A model generated the notes under the pieces. The model worked only from the letters and a program-made list of their open reading frames with translations. It searched no databases and was not told where the DNA came from. Source: Selaginella moellendorffii (lineage: Eukaryota; Plantae; Lycopodiophyta). Taken from it: a stretch of 10,150 nt of DNA. The DNA lies in NCBI RefSeq assembly GCF_000143415.4, contig NW_003314344.1, forward strand, positions 58,665 to 68,814. Direction: 5' to 3'. Within the stretch, counting starts at the first letter, position 1; each line of letters starts with the position of its first letter. This document shows, piece after piece, positions 1-10,150 of the stretch. The position numbers were made by a program, and so were the translations under genes.

Positions 1-459
1 TTACAAGTGAGCTACCGCCACACCTACAGGCCCGTCGCTGCTTAAAAAAAATACCTGTGAAGAACAGTTGTGCTAGGGTGTGATATCTGGCTGCTAGTAC
101 AAAACGTCCCACAATCATCTTCCACTTTCCCACTGAACCGGATATGGACTAATGCTTGGTTGTTTCAGGATTTCTAGCTGCCCAAGATGATGGAGTACGC
201 GAACATTAATGATTTTGTGGCTCCCATCCCGGCCGTGCAATCTTAGGGTCTACCAAACCTTGGTTCTCCCTCTAGATCCACCATGTTGCATATTCCTTCA
301 GAATATTCCTGCCCCACTCATAAGCCATAAGAATCGAATTGGGCTCTGATACCAATGTTAGGATTCTATCCCTTACACCCTAAGCCAACTGGCTAAAGGG
401 GTGATCACTTGATTGCAGGGCCCTTTCTTTATCCTATTATCTTGATCTGGTGCTTAACA
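1..459 (-). mobile_element. 5' end of a second LTR retroelement (short LTR about 356-459, PBS and internal sequence running off the window)
   Basis: TGTTA (356-360) and TAACA (455-459) inverted termini next to the PBS. No recognisable gag in 1-340. Confidence 0.6.
341..354 (-). promoter_or_regulatory. Primer-binding site, tRNA-iMet (TGGTATCAGAGCCC), of a second LTR element
   Basis: Perfect canonical PBS 1 nt from an LTR-like terminus (TGTTAG at 356). Confidence 0.88.
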
Positions 460-1420
460 GTGTAGTATTTCCTACTGCTCCTAGCTGCCAATAAACCAAA
501 CTACTTGGGAGAGATCTTTGCGTATGAGAAGAAGATTGCTGACAAGCTTCTTATGGTGCTAGAACATGAGGATGTAGGTGAGAATAAGAGATGCCTTTGC
601 CTCTTCCAACAAGTTGAAACCAAAGAATGGTGGCACTTTGTCTGGACACTCTTTACTGGTCAGGTGAATGATAACTAGGCTCTACTATGATATTGGATGG
701 TAAATATGGAAAAAGAACTTATAAATTTTTCCTTTGCTGAACCAATCATATGGTGCTCCCAAGAGTGCAATTGAGTCACAGGATATAAGGGCTTGTATGG
801 AAAGTGTATTGATCTGGGAAAACCACATATGGACCTCAATAATGGATTTGAGTTTCTTAGCCAAAATGCAAGATCACTCATGACCTCATCCTGTTGCAGC
901 CTAATACTTTAGAGGGAGCAAACTTAGACGAAATTGATAATGGTCAAATCATGTTTGACCCACTGGAGAACTTGAGTGGATGAAAATTCCCATTTGCTAC
1001 TACATAAATTCTTGATACAACCTCACACTGTCTCCCAGAACCACACAAGTTCTGGACACTTATAAATCCTTTAGGTTGGACATCCCCTCTAGAGACATCT
1101 AACTGAATCCTTTACTATGATCAATACAGTGGTCAAAGCAAACATGTATTGACAAGTGATATTGGAAAATTATGCTTATAAATTGGCTATCCCATTCCAC
1201 AAGACTATGGATGAGGTTTCAAACAGGCTGATATCCATAGACAATGCAACATGGATGCTTTGCTAAATGCAAAAAGCTAGAACCTTTCATAGAGGGATCA
1301 ATGTACATGGAATCAGCTTAGACCATATTGCCATTGTAATTGCCAAGGATGTGAAGGAGGAATTGTTTGGCTCAATTCCTTGTTCTAGTACATGCTAAAA
1401 AATCTGGACAAATACTAGCC
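460..1420 (+). pseudogene. Probable highly degenerate LINE (L1-like) ORF2 C-terminal remnant
   Basis: YFLLLL..RRLLTSFLW..KLKPKNGG resembles the post-RT FLW...PKxxGGLG motif. A Cys-containing stretch ending KIW near 1320-1410 resembles zf-RVT. Many stops and frameshifts. Confidence 0.4.
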
Positions 1421-1828
1421 AAACTCAAGTTTGACATCATCAGACTACTTTGCCATATTCCTGTCCTTACTCACCACCAATCCATAGATGATCCTTTAGT
1501 AGCCACTTTTCTGCAAATCCAAGAATGGATGCAAGTAGTTGCTATTGAGGTTTGCCAACCTAGATCTAGAGTTCATCCTACACAGCCAGACTAAGATGAA
1601 CATATACAAGTTCATCCCAGTCCAGTAGTACAAGTCTCCAACATCTTCATGACCTCATGGAAGTGAAAGTAATGGCTCTTTTCACCTGCACCATCTTCTC
1701 AATGCATGCCGGCACGGTTACAAGGCTTACCATTGAATCATCTGTGTGATTGCCATACTGGACAATCGTCTACCGGGGTGACTTTATAGGAGATTGGCAC
1801 ACCACCATCAATCTCCAAAATATCCGAG

Positions 1829-2361
1829 NNNNNNNNNNNNNNNNNNNNNNNNNNNNNNNNNNNNNNNNNNNNNNNNNNNNNNNNNNNNNNNNNNNNNNNN
1901 NNNNNNNNNNNNNNNNNNNNNNNNNNNNNNNNNNNNNNNNNNNNNNNNNNNNNNNNNNNNNNNNNNNNNNNNNNNNNNNNNNNNNNNNNNNNNNNNNNNN
2001 NNNNNNNNNNNNNNNNNNNNNNNNNNNNNNNNNNNNNNNNNNNNNNNNNNNNNNNNNNNNNNNNNNNNNNNNNNNNNNNNNNNNNNNNNNNNNNNNNNNN
2101 NNNNNNNNNNNNNNNNNNNNNNNNNNNNNNNNNNNNNNNNNNNNNNNNNNNNNNNNNNNNNNNNNNNNNNNNNNNNNNNNNNNNNNNNNNNNNNNNNNNN
2201 NNNNNNNNNNNNNNNNNNNNNNNNNNNNNNNNNNNNNNNNNNNNNNNNNNNNNNNNNNNNNNNNNNNNNNNNNNNNNNNNNNNNNNNNNNNNNNNNNNNN
2301 NNNNNNNNNNNNNNNNNNNNNNNNNNNNNNNNNNNNNNNNNNNNNNNNNNNNNNNNNNNNN
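1829..2361. other. Assembly gap (533 N)
   Basis: Run of N. Confidence 1.
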
Positions 2362-2709
2362 CTATCACCACACCCTCAATAACCTCTACGGTAGATCCAG
2401 CTACAATGGTATTAATATCTTCTTCAATAGGCTCATCTATCTTGCCATGAGCAGCCTCAGTAGCCAAAGATACAATTCCCCACCACCAACAACATCAGAT
2501 GCAAGTACCCCACCACTAGTACCAACAACCTTAATAACAGTAGCATCAAGATCAATTTGAGCATCCATCTCAACATCTATGTCATTGTTATGCTCTTCAT
2601 TGCCTCCAATATAATCAACAGTAAATTTATTGGATACTTAGGATGAATCTCCACTCAATCAGTCAAACCCATAGCAATCAAGGTTCCTTTTCCTAGAAAC
2701 TGAGGCCAT
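2362..2709 (-). pseudogene. Degenerate acidic, low-complexity ORF start of unknown identity
   Basis: ATG at 2709 gives MASVSRKRNLDCYGFD*LSGDSS*VSNKFTVDYIGGNEEHNNDIDVEMDAQIDLDATV..., continuing after a frameshift as ATEAAHGKIDEPIEEDINT into the gap. Confidence 0.35.
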
Positions 2710-2934
2710 TGAAGCTCACCTCAATGCTTCCTCTAAAATCCAAAGCAAAATACTATAACATTTAACTTGTAAAGTAAAGCAAACTTACGACATTATAATT
2801 TCAAGTCCCCTCTTAAAAATCCCAACTAGTCAAGCTTGATTTATATCTACTTTCACAAGAAAAGTTTGTAAGTAAAAAATGTGAAAAATAAATTGTAAAC
2901 TACAAGAAATGTAAAGAAAAAAATTCAAGTCACT

Positions 2935-3200
2935 AGGAGAGGTCAGTTCATGCAAGAACCAACCTCACTCTACCTCTCTAAATTTAGAAAATAAAATTTC
3001 TTAAGACCAAGAAGGCCTCAAAGGGAAAAGAAAAACATGATAAGAACATGGGAGAGGTTAGTTCATACAAAAACCAATATCTTTCACCTTCCTATTTTCA
3101 TAAAAAAATGCACCATTAAGTCCTTAAAATCATGAAAAAAACTTGAAGATGTTAATTCCCACAAGAATCAACATTTCTTTCTCTCCCTATTTTCTAAAAT
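2935..3200. repeat. Three degenerate copies of a roughly 58-bp motif
   Basis: GGAGAGGTYAGTTCATRCAARAACCAA...CCTATTTT-like copies at 2935-2992, 3050-3109 and 3145-3200. Confidence 0.7.
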
Positions 3201-3569
3201 ATAGAGATCTCACCCCCAACAAGAAAAAAAAAACCTAGGAAAGCTCACCTTTAGGAAAATTGATGTGATTTAGGAGCTAAAGAGAAATATCCTTATAAAT
3301 TTATTCATGAAAGTTTATTCATTAGCCAAGTGACTTTGAATAATGAACACCCTTTCATCTTTAAGATGTCAACCCTTAGTCTTGCTTCTTGTGTAAACTT
3401 TATACAACAAATGGATGTGGATGGAGATGGGGACTTGGCTAATTTCTATTTTAACCACATAATTTTAGGCTAGCCAAATATGGGAGCCTATATTTTTAAT
3501 CATAAGTAAGTGGCTCTTCATTTTTTAAGGATTCTATACTAGTTTATATTATACCTATTCTTTCTACAG

Positions 3570-4410
3570 GTCATAGTGCAACTTGACTATAGATATAACT
3601 GAATTTAACATCCAAGATTTCCAAATTTAAACCGTATTTTGGACATGTATGTTTGAGATTATTGAACAGTGAACTCGAAAGAAACCCAACTTCTGTGGTT
3701 TTATAGCAAATGTTGGTGTTAAATAGTTGGTTGTGCGGCAAGTGTTTGGAGGTGATAAAAGTCAACTATTACAAAAGTTGTGAGTTTCATTGGGCAAAGA
3801 GTGTTAACAAACATTGCCGATGCATCAAGTCTAATTTCCATCACAAGTTCAAATAGTTTTGTCGAGAGTGGATGGATGCACCCATTAAAAAGGAGCACAA
3901 AGTAAAGGCAAATGAGACATGAAGAAGATAAAGTGCCAATTGAACACCTTTCACAGATGGAGTGCTGGTTTGCATGCTGGAAAGTTCAAATATTTCATTA
4001 GAGCCATTATATTCTCTATGTAAGCTTTCTCTCAATTTCTTTCTTATCACATTCAAATGTTGCATTTTTCTTATGATCAACTATTTGATGACATTGCACT
4101 TACAGCAACAATTAATCTCTTTGAGAGCAAACATTAGAGTTGGAGAACTTTTGAAGCAAGGAAAGGAAAGGTGTCTCTCTATGAAGCTACACTCTTGGAC
4201 CTCACTAGATCTTTTGAGAAGTCATCAAAAGCTTTAGCTGCACAGAAAGTAAAGTTTGTTGATATAGGTCCAAAATTAAACAAGGTTTGAGTAGAAATAC
4301 AACACCAGTAGTAGGGTAAAAAGTTAAGATGGTGGAGGAAATTGTTGCTAGAACCACTCGGGGACATAAGGACAGTCTGTATGAAGTGTCGATAGATTTG
4401 ATGAGCCTAA
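3570..4410 (+). pseudogene. Degenerate Mutator/MULE-like transposase fragment, interrupted by the LTR element
   Basis: Manual translation across stops and frameshifts gives FWTCMFEII..KPNFCGFIAN..VRQVFG, SCEFHWAKSVNKH (CxFH motif), MECWFACWKVQIFH and NLFESKH*SW..SLYEATLLDLTRSF. These are colinear with MULE-type transposases recalled from bryophytes. Confidence 0.7.
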
Positions 4411-5563
4411 TGTAAGCCACAAATTTTTTCCTTTCCAATTTGCCAGCTTACCTTGTCTATCCGTCCAACACTGCCTTGGCTTTTGCTAAGTTCCCTCGCC
4501 AAGGTTCCCGCCTATGGTACCAGCTCTTACTTGGTCCTACTTGGTTTCAGCTACTCACTGCACAAGCAACAGTGTGTTAGCCATCCATCCACGGATTCCC
4601 AAATCTCTCTCAATCCCCCTTTCCGGGTTAGACTGGACTTAAGGTTCGGCTACACTCCCCACAAGCATAAGCAACCAAGCACACCAAGCTTTCAGGTTCC
4701 TAACATCCCTTGGTACCACAAAACTTGATTATGGGACCCTCTAAATCCCAAGTCTTAGGTGCAACACTTGCTTCGGGATGCCAGGGCGAAACACCGTGGC
4801 CTAATGGCCTAGTATGGGTACTTCTACCCCCCAACTTCCATCCCAAAGGGAAGGTCCAAGCCCCTAGGAAGGGTGAGGACTAATGAGCCGCATGGTACTC
4901 AAGTGGGGCACCACTCCACATGAGCCAGGAGCACCGCAATCGGTTTCCCTTTCAGGAGTGGGAGCTGCTCTTGAGCACTTCCTTGGATGGCCCCTCCGGC
5001 ACCAACCACGTCCATGCTCACTCCCACCCAAGGCCCCTCGGTCCCAGTCCCAACCTCAAGTCAGTTTGGAAGCTCCACTGGAGAGTTCCTTCAAAACTGG
5101 TTCCTAAACCTCATTATCCCTACTATACTTTTGGAACCCCCTACAGCCCCCCCCCCCCCCCCTGGGAGATGCACGCTTTGGGCTTTCACCCCTTGACCCG
5201 TATTAGTACTCGGACTTAGTCTCTGGCTTGATCTCAGACTCGATCTCGGATCCGACTTTGGATTCGGTCTCGGACTCAATCTCGGACTCGATCTCGGACC
5301 CGATCTCGGACCCGACCTCGGACTCGGCCTTGGACCCAATTTCGGATCTCGGACTCCGTCTCAAACTCGGTCTCGAACTCAGTCTCGAACTCGGTCTCCG
5401 AGTTGACCTTGGACTTGATTCCGGACTCTATCTCGAACTCGGTCTCCGAGTCGGTCTTGGACTCGATCTCGGACTCGGTCCCATCCGATGAACTTTTTAT
5501 CATTTTGGTCATGCTTTCGGGGATCCTTTAGCCTACAACACCTCGGGGAGTTGGTTCCTTACA
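4411..5563 (-). repeat. 3' LTR (1153 bp), termini TGTAAG...CTTACA
   Basis: 4411-4553 aligns to 10004-10135. The other end is set by CCTTACA at 5557-5563, which gives a 6-bp terminal inverted repeat with TGTAAG and directly abuts the PPT. CCTAA at 4406-4410 is the candidate TSD. Confidence 0.85.
5209..5480. repeat. CpG-rich tandem repeat, 12-bp unit about CTCGGACTCGAT (6-bp subunits), about 20 degenerate copies, in LTR U3
   Basis: Directly visible, e.g. ctcggactcgatctcggacccgatctcggacccgacctcgga. Confidence 0.93.
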
Positions 5564-5575
5564 ACTCCACCACCC
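5564..5575 (-). promoter_or_regulatory. Polypurine tract (GGGTGGTGGAGT)
   Basis: G-rich tract immediately 5' of the TGTAAGG LTR start on the minus strand. Confidence 0.75.
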
Positions 5576-5753
5576 ATAGAAGAAGTTTGATGCCCATATC
5601 GAACGTCTCTTTTTTATCCTACGACTTGTTGACCATGTCTCCGGGGGCATCCCCCCACTTAGTGGTGTGCCTAAGTTAGCCTCCCTGGCCAAGAGCCCAT
5701 AACAACGGAATATAGGTGTCCCTATACTCCTCACCTCACCACGCCCTAGTATA

Positions 5754-5807
5754 GGGTTGGGACTTGAACCCAGCCTTGCTTTACTAGGGGGTTGGGACTT
5801 GAACCCA
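5754..5807. repeat. Direct repeat GGGTTGGGACTTGAACCCA x2
   Basis: Identical 19-mers at 5754-5772 and 5789-5807. Confidence 0.9.
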
Positions 5808-5927
5808 ACCTCCGTAGAATACGTCTACGGATTCGACATCCCCACAGAGAGTCGGGCATAGTTCCCTATGCCTGGTTGACCTAGCTAACCCATGCTAATT
5901 AGCTTACCTTCGGCGCGCCTTCGGGTC

Positions 5928-6001
5928 CTAACATATGCCATTGCTCAACTTCTTAAATTGATACTTTTAATTGAACTTTGCATAAGTACATAGAGTTCTA
6001 C
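5928..6001 (-). other. Possible intron (74 nt) after the chromodomain
   Basis: CAAG|GTAGAA...TATGTTAG|GACC. AT-rich island whose first 25 nt match the 52-nt insert at 18 positions. Confidence 0.55.
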
Positions 6002-6008
6002 CTTGCAG

Positions 6009-6164
6009 AAATTCCTCCACTAGATCTCGCGTGTTCGCTAGGTTCTCCTCTGGTTCCCATGTTGCTTCGCAGTGTGGAAATCCTTTTCACTTCACATGGA
6101 ACTCTCTCACCTCGTGTTTTTGTCGCTTGCTCTTGCGCGTATTGAGGATGGCCTCAACTTCGTA
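6009..6164 (-). pseudogene. Chromodomain at integrase C-terminus
   Basis: YEVEAILN...EFHVK*KGFPHCEATWEPEENLAN...VEEF, with the conserved W mutated to TGA at 6087-6089. Confidence 0.92.
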
Positions 6165-6348
6165 TTCCTCCTCCCCTTGGATAACCTCAGGTAAAGGTCT
6201 AACTTGGTCCTTGCAAAGCGGATCCTCAAAATACAGCTTGAGTAAGTTCACGTGGAACACGGGGTGTATCTTCCCCATCTCTCGAGGAAGTTGGAGACGG
6301 TAAGCCACTTTACCGATTCGAGCCTCAATCTCGTAAGGCCCTGCGAAC

Positions 6349-6400
6349 CTGCTTAAGGAACTCAAGATCAATTCATTTACAGGAGTACATGAATTTTTAC
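6349..6400 (-). other. Putative spliceosomal intron (52 nt) before the GPY motif
   Basis: AAAG|GTAAAA...TTCCTTAAGCAG|GTTC. Removal restores KLTQRFAGPY and the frame. The unspliced sequence has an immediate TAA. Confidence 0.85.
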
Positions 6401-6818
6401 CTTTGTGTCAACTTTTGGCTGATCCCACTTAGTAGCCTAAGGTTCTTGGTGTTCAGCCACACCTTCTCCCCAACTTGGAACTCTACATCCCGGCGCTTCT
6501 GGTTCACGTACTTAGTTTGCTTTTGTTGAGCCCGTTCTAAGGAATCCTTCACTAAATTCCAAATGTTGAGTCTTTCTGCCGTGAATGCCTCTACTGCGGG
6601 TAACTCTCTATGATACTCGACCACGTCGAGTTCCACAGGACCTTCAATAGCTCGCCCATTGATGACTTCCCATGGACTCACCCCGATGCTCGAATGTGGT
6701 GAGTTGTTATAACACATTTCCGCAAGTCCCAAATGACTTACCCAATCAGTTTGGTCTCCCGAGACATAACATCGTAAATAATCCTCCAGTTGCCTATTCA
6801 CCCGTTCTGTTTGTCCGT

Positions 6819-6865
6819 CTGTTAAGAAGTGTTAGTGCCATCAATCTTGACTTAATACCCATTAC
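6819..6865 (-). other. Putative spliceosomal intron (47 nt) in integrase core
   Basis: ACAG|GTAATG...CACTAAC...TTCTTAACAG|ACGG. Removal restores HPQTDGQTERVN and the frame. Canonical CTAAC branch motif present. Confidence 0.85.
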
Positions 6866-7079
6866 CTGTCTGCGGGTGATAGGTTGTGCTGAATTTCAAC
6901 TTGGTGTGATACTGTTCTAGGAGTGTCCTCCAAAACCTATTGGTGAAGATTTTATCTCGATCTGAGATAATCTCTTACAACCTTCCCCGCACTCGAACCA
7001 CTTGTTCGAAGAACAATTTCGCCACATCTTTCACATCCACTTCCGTTGTGGTGGGTATGAAATGTGCCATCTTCGAGAA

Positions 7080-7367
7080 GAATGCTACTGGATGGTTGTG
7101 TTGCTTCAAAATTGCGCCCAACACAAAGTCTGAAGCATCCGTTTCTACCTCAAAGTCCTTACCAAAGTCCGGTAACGCTAGCACGGGAGCCTTCCTCAAC
7201 TTCCCCTGGAGGTGGACGAATGCTGTCTCGCATTCCACTATCCATACCATCTTCCCTTTTCCCGTTTGGTCCGTTAAGGGTAAGGCTACTCTCGAATAGT
7301 GTTTGATAAACTTTCGATAGTAGTTGCATAGCCCTATGAATGCCCTTAACTTGTGTACATTTGGTGG
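7080..7367 (-). pseudogene. pol: RT connection and N-terminal RNase H (truncated by internal deletion)
   Basis: LRAFIGLCNYYRKFI, APVLALPDF, ETDASDFVLGAIL and HPVAF, followed by a direct jump into integrase. Confidence 0.9.
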
Positions 7368-8255
7368 TCACTCCCAATCCTGGATCGCTTGGACCTTCTC
7401 AGGGTCCACCTTGAGCCCGTCCTTGCCCACCACATGCCCAAGAAACTTTACCTCTTGTTGAGCAAAGTCATATTTGCTCTCTTTAGCATACAGCTGGTGT
7501 TCCCTTAGTTTCTCAAACACTTTTGTCAAGTGTTTGGCATGCTCCTCTAGTGTTTCGCTATAGATCAGGATGTCGTCAATATAGACGACCACAAAGTGAT
7601 CCAAATAGGGTATAGAGATATGGTTCATCAACGCTGAAAATGTTGCCGGCGCATTGCATAGCCCAAAGGGCATCACCAAAAACTCGAAGCTCCCATACCT
7701 CGTTCGACAGGTTGTCTTCTCGACATCTTCCTCTGCTACCCTGATCTGGTAGTATCCTGACCTTAGGTCAATCCTCGAGAAGTATTTTGCCTTTCCCAAC
7801 CTATCGAACAGGTCCTCAATCCTTGGCAAAGGGTACTTGTTCTTCTTTGTATATTTGTTGAGCAACCGGTAGTTTATGCACATGTGCATAGATCCATCTT
7901 TCTTTTTCACAAATAGCACCGGCACCCCATACGGCGACTTGCTCAACCTAACATACCCTTTGTCCACCAACTCCTCTAGTTGGTGCTTGAGCTCCGCAAG
8001 TTCTTTTTCGTTCAAACGATAGGGGGGACGAACCACCGCCTCAGCACCCTCGACTAGCTCAATCTTATATTCTATTGGTCGTGCGGGGGGCAATCCCGCT
8101 GGTAGCTCATCTGGCATGGTATCCTGGAATTGGTCCAACACCCGCTGGATCACTAAAGGTACTTCTTCCGTTCCAATCTTTTTGTCACTTCTTATCGAGA
8201 GTAAGCACAAAAATGCAGCCTTGGTCCCTTTAGTGAGTTGTCCTCTCGTGGACAC
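7368..8255 (-). pseudogene. pol: Reverse transcriptase domain
   Basis: [41 protein letters not shown] (7572-7583) and FLGHVV motifs. Confidence 0.98.
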
Positions 8256-8303
8256 CGGGTTTAGGCACGAATCTTTGGCCTTGCATTGCCCTACCTTTAG
8301 ATC

Positions 8304-8696
8304 CTAGGCCTCCACCCTGGATCTTCTTCCTTGGGCATTCGCTAGTACCACAAGGTTCCTACTTTGTCCATGTAGGGCTACCACAAACCGATTGAACCAA
8401 TCCATCCCGAAGATCACGTCAAATCCCACCATGTCCAACACAGTGAAGTCCATGTTTACTATCCAAGTCCCTACTTCGCCTCTCGCTTGTCGAAGTACCT
8501 CATTGGTGCTTTGGCTACCTTGAACAAACTCTATAGTCCTTGGTTCACTTAGCCGCTGCACCGTTAGTCCGGCTTGCCGGACTATGTCTGCAGCCACAAA
8601 ATTATCCAAAGCACCCGTGTCAATAAGGATCTTAACAAAGCTACCCCTGAGCTTCCCTCGGAGGGCTAGTAGATGTCGCAAACGACTCTCTACCAA
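8304..8696 (-). pseudogene. pol: Aspartic protease domain
   Basis: ILIDTGALDNFV (DTGA at 8610-8621) and FDVIFGMDWF motifs. Confidence 0.93.
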
Positions 8697-8802
8697 AGTT
8701 GCTCGTGTAATGAGTAACTTTGAGCTAGGGACTAGATCACATACCTCAATTTGGACTTCACCCGACTTAATGGCTATATTGGCTCTGGCCTTCTTTGGCT
8801 AG

Positions 8803-9944
8803 GGACATTCCCTCAAAAAGTGTCCCGCTTCACTGCAGTTGTAGCATACGTTGTTTCCCACGCTGTTAAATGACTTGACCTTTTTATCCGTGGGTTTGTC
8901 TCTTTTTGCTTGACTCCCCCACATACTTGCTCACTGGCCACCGGATTTGCCCTTCCGGAACCCCGAGGACTCATTCTTAGAGAAACTCTTCTTGAATTTC
9001 CCTTTGCTATAAGTTCCCCTTGGTTTGGCCCCTTTGCTAAATGTGGATCCCAACCCCGTCGCGTTCCCCTTTCACAGGTTATCATTGAAATGCACCTTGA
9101 TAGCCGCATCCAACGCTTCCTTGTAGTTGGTCGGGTTCCAGTGCATCACCTCACCGCGAGCCCAGGTTTGCAAACCTGATATGAAGGCATGGAACGCATC
9201 CATATCCCCCATGTCCGTGACAAGTATCCTCTTTGCCATGAACCCATTCACATACTCCTGGATAGTTCCAGTCTACTTTAGCCTACTCAGCTTATCTCTT
9301 AGATGCAGAGTGGCATTCGGAGGAACATATGTTGCGCAGATCCTCGCTTTCATCATGTCTTAAGTGGCCACCGGTCCTTCGTTGGCCTCTGTCGTTCTCC
9401 ACCAAGACTTGGCATTATCTGCCAAGTATGGTTTTGCACATGGGACCTTCTCCGAGCTCGGTAACAACAACGCTTGGAAGTAGTCCTCCATATCGTAAAA
9501 TCAATCCTCCACCACTTTATAGTCGTTCACTCCCTTGAAGACCGGTGGGGGCTTTGGTTTGTACTTGGGCACTGCTTGTGGGACTAATTCCACTTCGGTC
9601 TATTCAACCTTGTCTGGTTTTGCCTCAATCCCTGCCAAAGGGTCTGGACCTTCTGTGCTGCCAACATCCGCAGTCTTTTGCCTTTTCTTCCGCTTCTTGT
9701 CACGCTTTAGCTTGCACACGAGAGTCTCCAGCAGGGCATTGGTCTGTGCCAATTGTCCTTCTAGAACATCCAATCGAGCCTTGGACGACCGAACCTCACC
9801 ACCGGACTCCTGTTTGGAAGTTTCCTCATTGGAGTCCTCCTCATGCAAGGATTCCTCATCCATAGCCTCTTGTTCGACCGGAGCCTCCAGCTCTGGAGGA
9901 GGTTCTGTCCCCGCCTTGGTTCGCTTCCGCCCTGCCTTTGCCAT
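8803..9944 (-). pseudogene. gag: gag region of gag-pol polyprotein with CCHC zinc knuckle
   Basis: ATG at 9944. Reading through stops gives PPVFKG..., AKSWWR, LRDKLSRLK*TGTIQEY and FISGL, then CYNCSEAGHFLREC at 8805-8846. Same frame as pol. Confidence 0.9.
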
Positions 9945-9977
9945 CTCCTAACAATCCGCCTCTATCCTTCGCTAAAA

Positions 9978-10044
9978 CTGAGGAAAAGGCTCCGATACCA
10001 AATTGTAAGCCATAAATTTTTTCCTTTCCAATTTAACAGCTTAC
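9978..10044 (-). other. Candidate leader intron (67 nt) spanning the LTR end and PBS
   Basis: GAG|GTAAGC donor in U5 and CCTTTTCCTCAG| acceptor about 33 nt before the gag ATG. Confidence 0.6.
9988..10000 (-). promoter_or_regulatory. Primer-binding site, tRNA-iMet type (TGGTATCGGAGCC)
   Basis: One mismatch to canonical TGGTATCAGAGC, 3 nt inside the LTR end. Confidence 0.92.
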
Positions 10045-10135
10045 CTCGTCTATTCGTCCAACACTGCCTTGGCTTTTGCTAAGTTCCCTCACCAAGGGTC
10101 CCGCCTATGGTACCGGTCCTACTTGATTTTAGCTA
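10004..10135 (-). repeat. 5' LTR (U5 end, partial)
   Basis: 132 bp align to 4411-4553 with 9 substitutions and one 11-bp indel. It lies 3 nt from the PBS. Similarity stops after 10135. Confidence 0.93.
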
Positions 10136-10150
10136 GTAGACTACGTGGAT

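Follow-up and report, generated by a model that had tools for sequence, protein, structure and literature searches.

Retrotransposition normally strips introns. How can the coding region of a long terminal repeat (LTR) retrotransposon then be interrupted by two inserts that look like spliceosomal introns? This question is raised by a 10,150-nt stretch of DNA (the window), which carries a plant-type Ty3/gypsy chromovirus on its minus strand. The element reaches from beyond position 10150 down to 4411 and is an old, non-autonomous copy. An initial annotation, made from the letters of the window, had read it as a retrotransposon with several introns, in which splicing would separate translatable RNA from RNA that can be copied. 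We analysed the reading frame, the inserts, the relatives of the element and its decay, and weighed this reading against other explanations.

Two inserts in the integrase frame

The coding region of the element is a single minus-strand frame that runs from 9947 to 6866 with zero frameshifts. The frame changes at exactly two points, 6865-6819 and 6400-6349, both located in integrase and both of the form GT...AG. That the gag-pol frame has no frameshift except at these two inserts had been noted in the initial annotation and proved correct; eleven in-frame stops and an internal deletion of ~0.75 kb had been missed. Insert 1 (47 nt, phase 1) separates the motif HPQT from DGQTE and reads CAG/GTAATG ... 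CACTAAC ... AACAG/A, where slashes mark the insert boundaries. Insert 2 (52 nt, phase 2) is located just upstream of a GPY/F-type motif and reads AAG/GTAAAA ... AAGCAG/G. The inserts are alike in their MAG/R exon contexts, GTAA donors and CAG acceptors, i.e. both have consensus-like GT...AG ends. The CACTAAC box of insert 1 is found 13 nt before its 3' end.

The junctions were checked by aligning the three exons, with split codons entered as X, to three relatives without inserts (L001, L002 and L004). After removal of the inserts, integrase aligned gap-free at both junctions to all three of these intronless sequences, and no codon was lost. The view that two host-like, precisely placed GT-AG inserts interrupt a chromovirus integrase was borne out by these alignments. 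When the inserts are read unspliced, insert 1 leads to a stop five codons in, just before DGQTE, and insert 2 leads to a stop at once.

The GC content was 36% in insert 1 and 33% in insert 2, compared with 43-55% in the adjoining 100 nt of exon and 35-42% in the flanking host DNA. The inserts had no similarity to each other and no copy elsewhere in the window. A local duplication, filler sequence or a single small transposon family was rejected as their source because there was no match in the window.

We applied a strict filter for intron-like sequences (G/GTAA donor, YAG acceptor, length of 40-90 nt, GC ≤ 0.40 and a CTNAN box). On the sense strand, five candidate pairs were found, and these came from just three donors (10044, 6865 and 6400). 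The antisense strand yielded 0 pairs and block shuffles yielded 0.5 ± 0.9 pairs. By a rough estimate, the chance that two random insertions share such ends and MAG/R sites and leave the coding intact is < 1e-6. Hence, the two inserts in integrase are real, and their likeness to introns exceeds what chance would produce.

This estimate bears directly on the possibility that the inserts are junk that arose after insertion, i.e. two small filler or insertion events in a dead copy that look like introns by chance. The copy has indeed been decaying for long, with LTRs that are 92-94% identical and eleven stops, and the LTR pair contains one 11-nt duplication. However, random events would have had to produce GT-AG ends, GTAA donors, CAG acceptors and MAG/R sites with no coding base lost or gained, and this twice. 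Moreover, there is no other frame-shifting indel in ~3.9 kb. We consider an origin as junk very unlikely.

We lean towards the reading that the inserts are genuine short U2-type spliceosomal introns in integrase that were inherited via unspliced genomic RNA. Both inserts would have been present in the RNA template that was reverse-transcribed into this copy, and the lineage would transmit its introns by copying unspliced RNA, as retroviruses do. In an intact relative, the unspliced RNA would give Gag, protease (PR), reverse transcriptase (RT) and RNase H (RH) together with an integrase truncated just before DGQTE. The spliced RNA would give the full integrase (IN) with its chromodomain. In this way, splicing would set the amount of integrase, as has been proposed for Pol and the intron of Ogre.

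Relatives of the element and its host

In a protein search with RT, the best relatives, which came from plants and from metagenome and assembly contigs, were 62-65% identical; for angiosperm chromoviruses, the identity was 53-61%. The values for the four related elements were 62% (L001), 63% (L002), 62% (L003) and 64% (L004). A protein search with the integrase exon gave four proteins at an E-value ≤ 0.001 among 13 candidates, and the full-length matches were ≤ 39% identical. The exhaustive search of representatives with the integrase exon reached about 40-49% identity at best (Haematococcus and Tanacetum). No protein identical to any open reading frame (ORF) of the window was found in the collections searched, and none of the hits from a scan of JGI metagenomes with six peptides was confirmed. 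We also scanned metagenomes for the pattern of an integrase with a GTAA intron at HPQT/DGQTE. All of the 118 stretches found were GACA-type repeats save one (L040), and this one is an intronless integrase read in frame.

As a side observation, the contig of L003 (ENA scaffold_48_c1) has, beyond the related element, an ORF on the opposite strand at 11497-12189 with a FAM200/ZBED5 RNase-like (hAT-type) Pfam match.

Several of these results count against introns that were inherited by the lineage, as do some properties of the inserts themselves. L001-L004 read straight through both insert sites, so that inserts are absent from 4/4 relatives. Searches of 5.8 billion clustered proteins, of 1.84 billion representatives and of the JGI metagenomes gave no sister copy, and the evidence consists of a single copy, which is dead. 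In insert 2, only loose CTNA matches were seen, which is a weak branch-site match. Lengths of 47-52 nt are under the usual intron minimum of seed plants.

Because the four related chromoviruses lack them, the inserts are a recent gain in this lineage. Such a gain could have been a one-off: functionless host introns would have been reverse-spliced into the element RNA and fixed by reverse transcription, or brought in by template switching, in an already non-autonomous lineage for which an open integrase frame was no longer important, and the family would be without them. The inserts would then resemble introns because they come from introns of the host. This explanation is the main rival, and we consider it doubtful. 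It agrees with relatives that have no inserts, with a copy that is a deletion derivative and needs no integrase of its own, and with inserts of host-like composition at MAG/R protosplice sites. However, it requires two independent rare events in one lineage, and good introns would be liable to be spliced out before the next round of copying. We know of no precedent for a one-off acquisition of host introns by retroelement RNA, and we counted this against the explanation as well.

The objection from intron length depends on the host. In the chromodomain of the element, the first and the third cage position are still aromatic. According to Neumann et al. 2019 (PMC6317226), this feature is restricted to chromoviruses from algae, mosses and club-mosses. 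In Selaginella, intron lengths have a fungal-type, very short distribution, unlike in other land plants (PMC6157073). The DNA is eukaryotic and, given the plant-type RT and primer binding site, not human; its host is probably a non-seed plant, e.g. a club-moss, in which introns are short as in fungi. With a host of the club-moss kind, a plant-type element and introns of 47 and 52 nt would no longer be at odds. The two published findings make it plausible that the inserts can be spliced.

Decay, leader and remaining parts of the element

All parts of the element are on the minus strand. Pfam finds gag with its CCHC motif, PR, RT, RH and IN in this order in one frame, with RH and IN being partial. 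In the gag region (8802-9947), the ATG is found at 9944 and the CCHC zinc knuckle at 8802-8852 (zf-CCHC, E-value 3.3e-07). It is followed by the aspartic protease (8343-8642; RVP_2, E-value 4.2e-15) and RT (7431-7910; RVT_1, E-value 6.6e-37). The integrase exon between inserts 1 and 2 (6401-6818) is open and without a stop. Downstream of insert 2, the C-terminal SH3-like domain of integrase (GPY/F region) is located at 6231-6348 (SH3_Tf2-1, E-value 3e-16), and a complete chromodomain is present at the integrase C-terminus (6006-6164; Chromo, E-value 2.6e-14, model positions 1-51 of 53, with a stop read as X). Two LTRs are seen as a direct repeat of 4411-4553 and 10004-10150. Hence, the element has the features of a chromovirus except for the parts deleted from this copy.

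Ten in-frame stops were found between 9947 and 6866, with their first bases at 9602, 9503, 9362, 9275, 9074, 8933, 8801, 8306, 7370 and 6977. Six of them are in gag and a seventh is at its 3' edge (8801-8799), while the integrase core remnant contains one (6977-6975). The eleventh stop is a TGA in the chromodomain (6089-6087). The decay of the ~3.9 kb of coding sequence (9947-5970) consists of substitutions only, i.e. eleven nonsense codons and zero frameshifts. Such a predominance of substitutions is unusual.

Stops of all three kinds in a frame without frameshifts could also be seen if the genetic code were reassigned, so that in-frame stops were sense codons and the copy were less dead than it looks. 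However, PBS (primer binding site) and RT are plant-type, and the deletion in RNase H and integrase shows decay anyway. Moreover, only three of the seven alignable stops are at positions where relatives have Trp, Gln or Arg, the codons of which can be one transition from a stop. A reassigned code is extremely improbable.

The internal deletion comprises ~248 codons between the middle of RNase H and the middle of the integrase core when compared with L002-L004, and the relatives carry 744-750 nt there. RNase H is largely lost, together with the HHCC finger and the first part of the integrase core, including its first catalytic Asp, and no H2C2 match and no N-terminal rve match was obtained with Pfam. 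An N-terminal stub of RNase H remains at 7068-7244 (RT_RNaseH_2, model positions 1-64 of 100 only). The integrase core remnant, which is the exon 5' of insert 1, runs to ...YHPQT at 6866-7058; it was placed by a weak match to rve (model positions 70-102 of 102) and by alignments to relatives. The deletion junction (7082-7059) is in frame and falls on a short F-SK motif, which relatives carry in RNase H as well as in the integrase core. This argues for a deletion of the template-switch or short-homology type, which would have produced a non-autonomous derivative. Splicing was rejected as the source of the deletion, because the junction is a short shared peptide/DNA motif and not a GT-AG pair. 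The incomplete integrase is a defect of this copy and not of the family.

The copy is dead whether spliced or not, because it has eleven in-frame stops and has lost most of RNase H, the HHCC finger and the first Asp. For the same reason, the statement that functional integrase requires splicing does not apply to this copy. It could hold only for a hypothetical intact relative, in which the inserts would bring stops.

We checked the dinucleotide composition of the element and of its flank (region 1-4410, GC 35-42%). The observed/expected ratio of CpG was 0.15-0.21 in the flanks, with TpG/CpA in excess, and 0.61-0.67 in the element. Methylation of the host genome is heavy, and the element either is younger than the DNA around it or was richer in CpG at the start. 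The substitution-only decay fits transition-driven loss in methylated DNA. Repeat-induced point mutation (RIP) was rejected, with a TpA/ApT of 0.75-1.02 and a (CpA+TpG)/(ApC+GpT) of 0.99-1.53; the flanks show CpG loss with a gain of TpG/CpA.

Two further introns had been proposed in the initial annotation, one in the leader and one after the chromodomain. Of the 5' LTR, the 3'-terminal 147 nt are within the window (10004-10150); they end in ...TTACA, and the remainder is beyond the window edge. The PBS TGGTATCGGAGCC is located at 9988-10000 and starts 3 nt past the 5' LTR end. It differs by one base from TGGTATCAGAGC, which is found at the same location in the relatives L002 and L003. A PBS of the TGGTATCAGAGC type matches the plant initiator tRNA-Met. 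The candidate leader intron (9978-10044, 67 nt, GTAAGC...TCCTCAG) covers the PBS together with the end of U5. The donor is located in U5 and is repeated in the 3' LTR at 4451. The donor/acceptor pair is real as sequence and passed the strict filter. However, one extra candidate is about what chance yields in the block shuffles, and nothing comparable was present in the leaders of relatives. The pair is a motif match and a putative intron at most.

The island after the chromodomain (6001-5928) has a weak GTAGAA donor and begins only after the end of the complete Chromo match at 6006. For coding, an intron at this point is not required: the chromodomain is complete without it, and the ORF ends 12 codons on regardless (pol stop codon at 5969-5967). 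The island is more likely an AT-rich 3' untranslated/polypurine tract stretch together with the first bases of the 3' LTR.

The candidates belong to the full model of the initial annotation, in which the family would have three or four introns and one of these would take out the PBS. Any spliced RNA would then be translatable but not primable, and replication would be limited to fully unspliced RNA. The leader pair favours this model to some degree, since it passed the filter and has a donor in U5, which is hence transcribed. Yet the number of extra candidates equals the chance expectation of 0.5 ± 0.9, relatives lack the pair, and the donor of the third intron is poor, with nothing in the coding sequence that calls for this intron. 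The model is also superfluous for explaining intron retention. We judge it to be distinctly unlikely.

The 3' LTR (4411-5934) is ~1.5 kb long. Its end at 4411 is firm; its start near 5934 (TGTTAG...) can only be inferred, since the window stops within the 5' LTR. The interior of the 3' LTR contains a 12-nt tandem array of ~21 copies (5230-5477) and a run of ~14 G (about 5150-5165). Three adjacent hairpins are located at 5740-5835 on the minus strand, just 3' of the pol stop (fold of -42.3 kcal/mol, z of -6.2). Two of them are copies of a T-arm-like unit (GGTTGGG-TTCAAGT-CCCAACC), and ARAGORN called no tRNA here. Possibly, the hairpins form an element of U3 that is structured or derives from a tRNA. 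Rfam and ARAGORN detected nothing in the window as a whole. The DNA that flanks the element had no convincing coding ORF in the window, and an assembly gap of 533 N is found at 1829-2361.

Comparison with known intron-keeping elements

In some retroviruses, the major donor is located upstream of the PBS, and hence spliced RNAs lack the PBS. That only unspliced RNA could be copied had been inferred for the element in the initial annotation. This is standard retroviral logic and not a novel principle, and splicing-dependent expression of Pol is already known in Ogre. Retroviral and Cer1-type genomes contain splice sites, and their genomic RNA is exported unspliced. Their introns are inherited as only unspliced RNA is packaged and copied (PMC10309623). 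Unlike in the element described here, Gag-Pol is read from the unspliced RNA in these genomes, and splicing is used for env or accessory genes.

Penelope-like elements also retain introns after retrotransposition (PMC8557442). However, their RT and endonuclease are unrelated, and they replicate by another mechanism and possess no LTR, PBS or integrase. A closer system is the fission-yeast element Tf2, a Ty3/gypsy element that bears a chromodomain. It contains a cryptic intron, and its RNA is a spliceosome substrate (review PMC7175516). The Tf2 intron is linked to small interfering RNA and heterochromatin and is not needed to open the frame, unlike the inserts in our element.

In EVADE and other Ty1/copia elements, as well as in Drosophila copia, alternative splicing sets the protein output, with the unspliced RNA serving as template (PMC5580714; PMC12786077). 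In these elements, pol is spliced out so that Gag is made in excess, and the full-length frame needs no splicing to be open. Here, in contrast, the frame opens only when the inserts are taken out.

Literature searches gave no report of frame-breaking introns within the integrase or pol of a chromovirus. A chromovirus family, probably of a non-seed plant whose introns are very short, that stably carries obligate integrase introns, and possibly one across the PBS, would make integrase only from spliced RNA and could prime and copy only its unspliced RNA. Retrotransposon RNA would then also be a possible natural route of intron gain, via reverse splicing and reverse transcription. We rate this wider scenario as unlikely. 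If no copy other than this dead one has the inserts, the finding is reduced to a curiosity on retroelement RNA that picks up host introns. If the scenario is true, it would offer a handle on how genomic RNA with introns avoids being spliced or kept in the nucleus. It would also offer a handle on whether reverse splicing into RNA that is reverse-transcribed creates new introns.

The nearest parallel is Ogre, a Ty3/gypsy element of the Tat lineage in legumes. As summarised in PMC12786077, Ogre has a spliceosomal intron in its coding region, its downstream Pol is made only from spliced RNA and its genomic copies keep the intron. Our element is like Ogre in being an LTR retrotransposon with intron-type inserts retained inside the coding region. 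However, Ogre has one intron between protease and RT, and this intron has been shown to be spliced, whereas the element in the window has two very short candidate introns inside integrase. PR to RT is one continuous frame here, with no insert at the site of the Ogre intron. Moreover, the Tat lineage is not a chromovirus lineage; it has a second, archaeal-type RNase H and no chromodomain. In our element, a chromodomain is present and no additional RNase H match was obtained with Pfam. The element is not an Ogre/Tat element. What the inserts may represent is the Ogre-type principle in a new place (inside integrase) and in a new lineage (chromovirus). The few LTR elements that keep introns, Ogre and EVADE among them, are informative on the balance between translation and replication, and obligate integrase introns in a chromovirus would, if true, add both a new place and a new lineage to this intron-keeping strategy.

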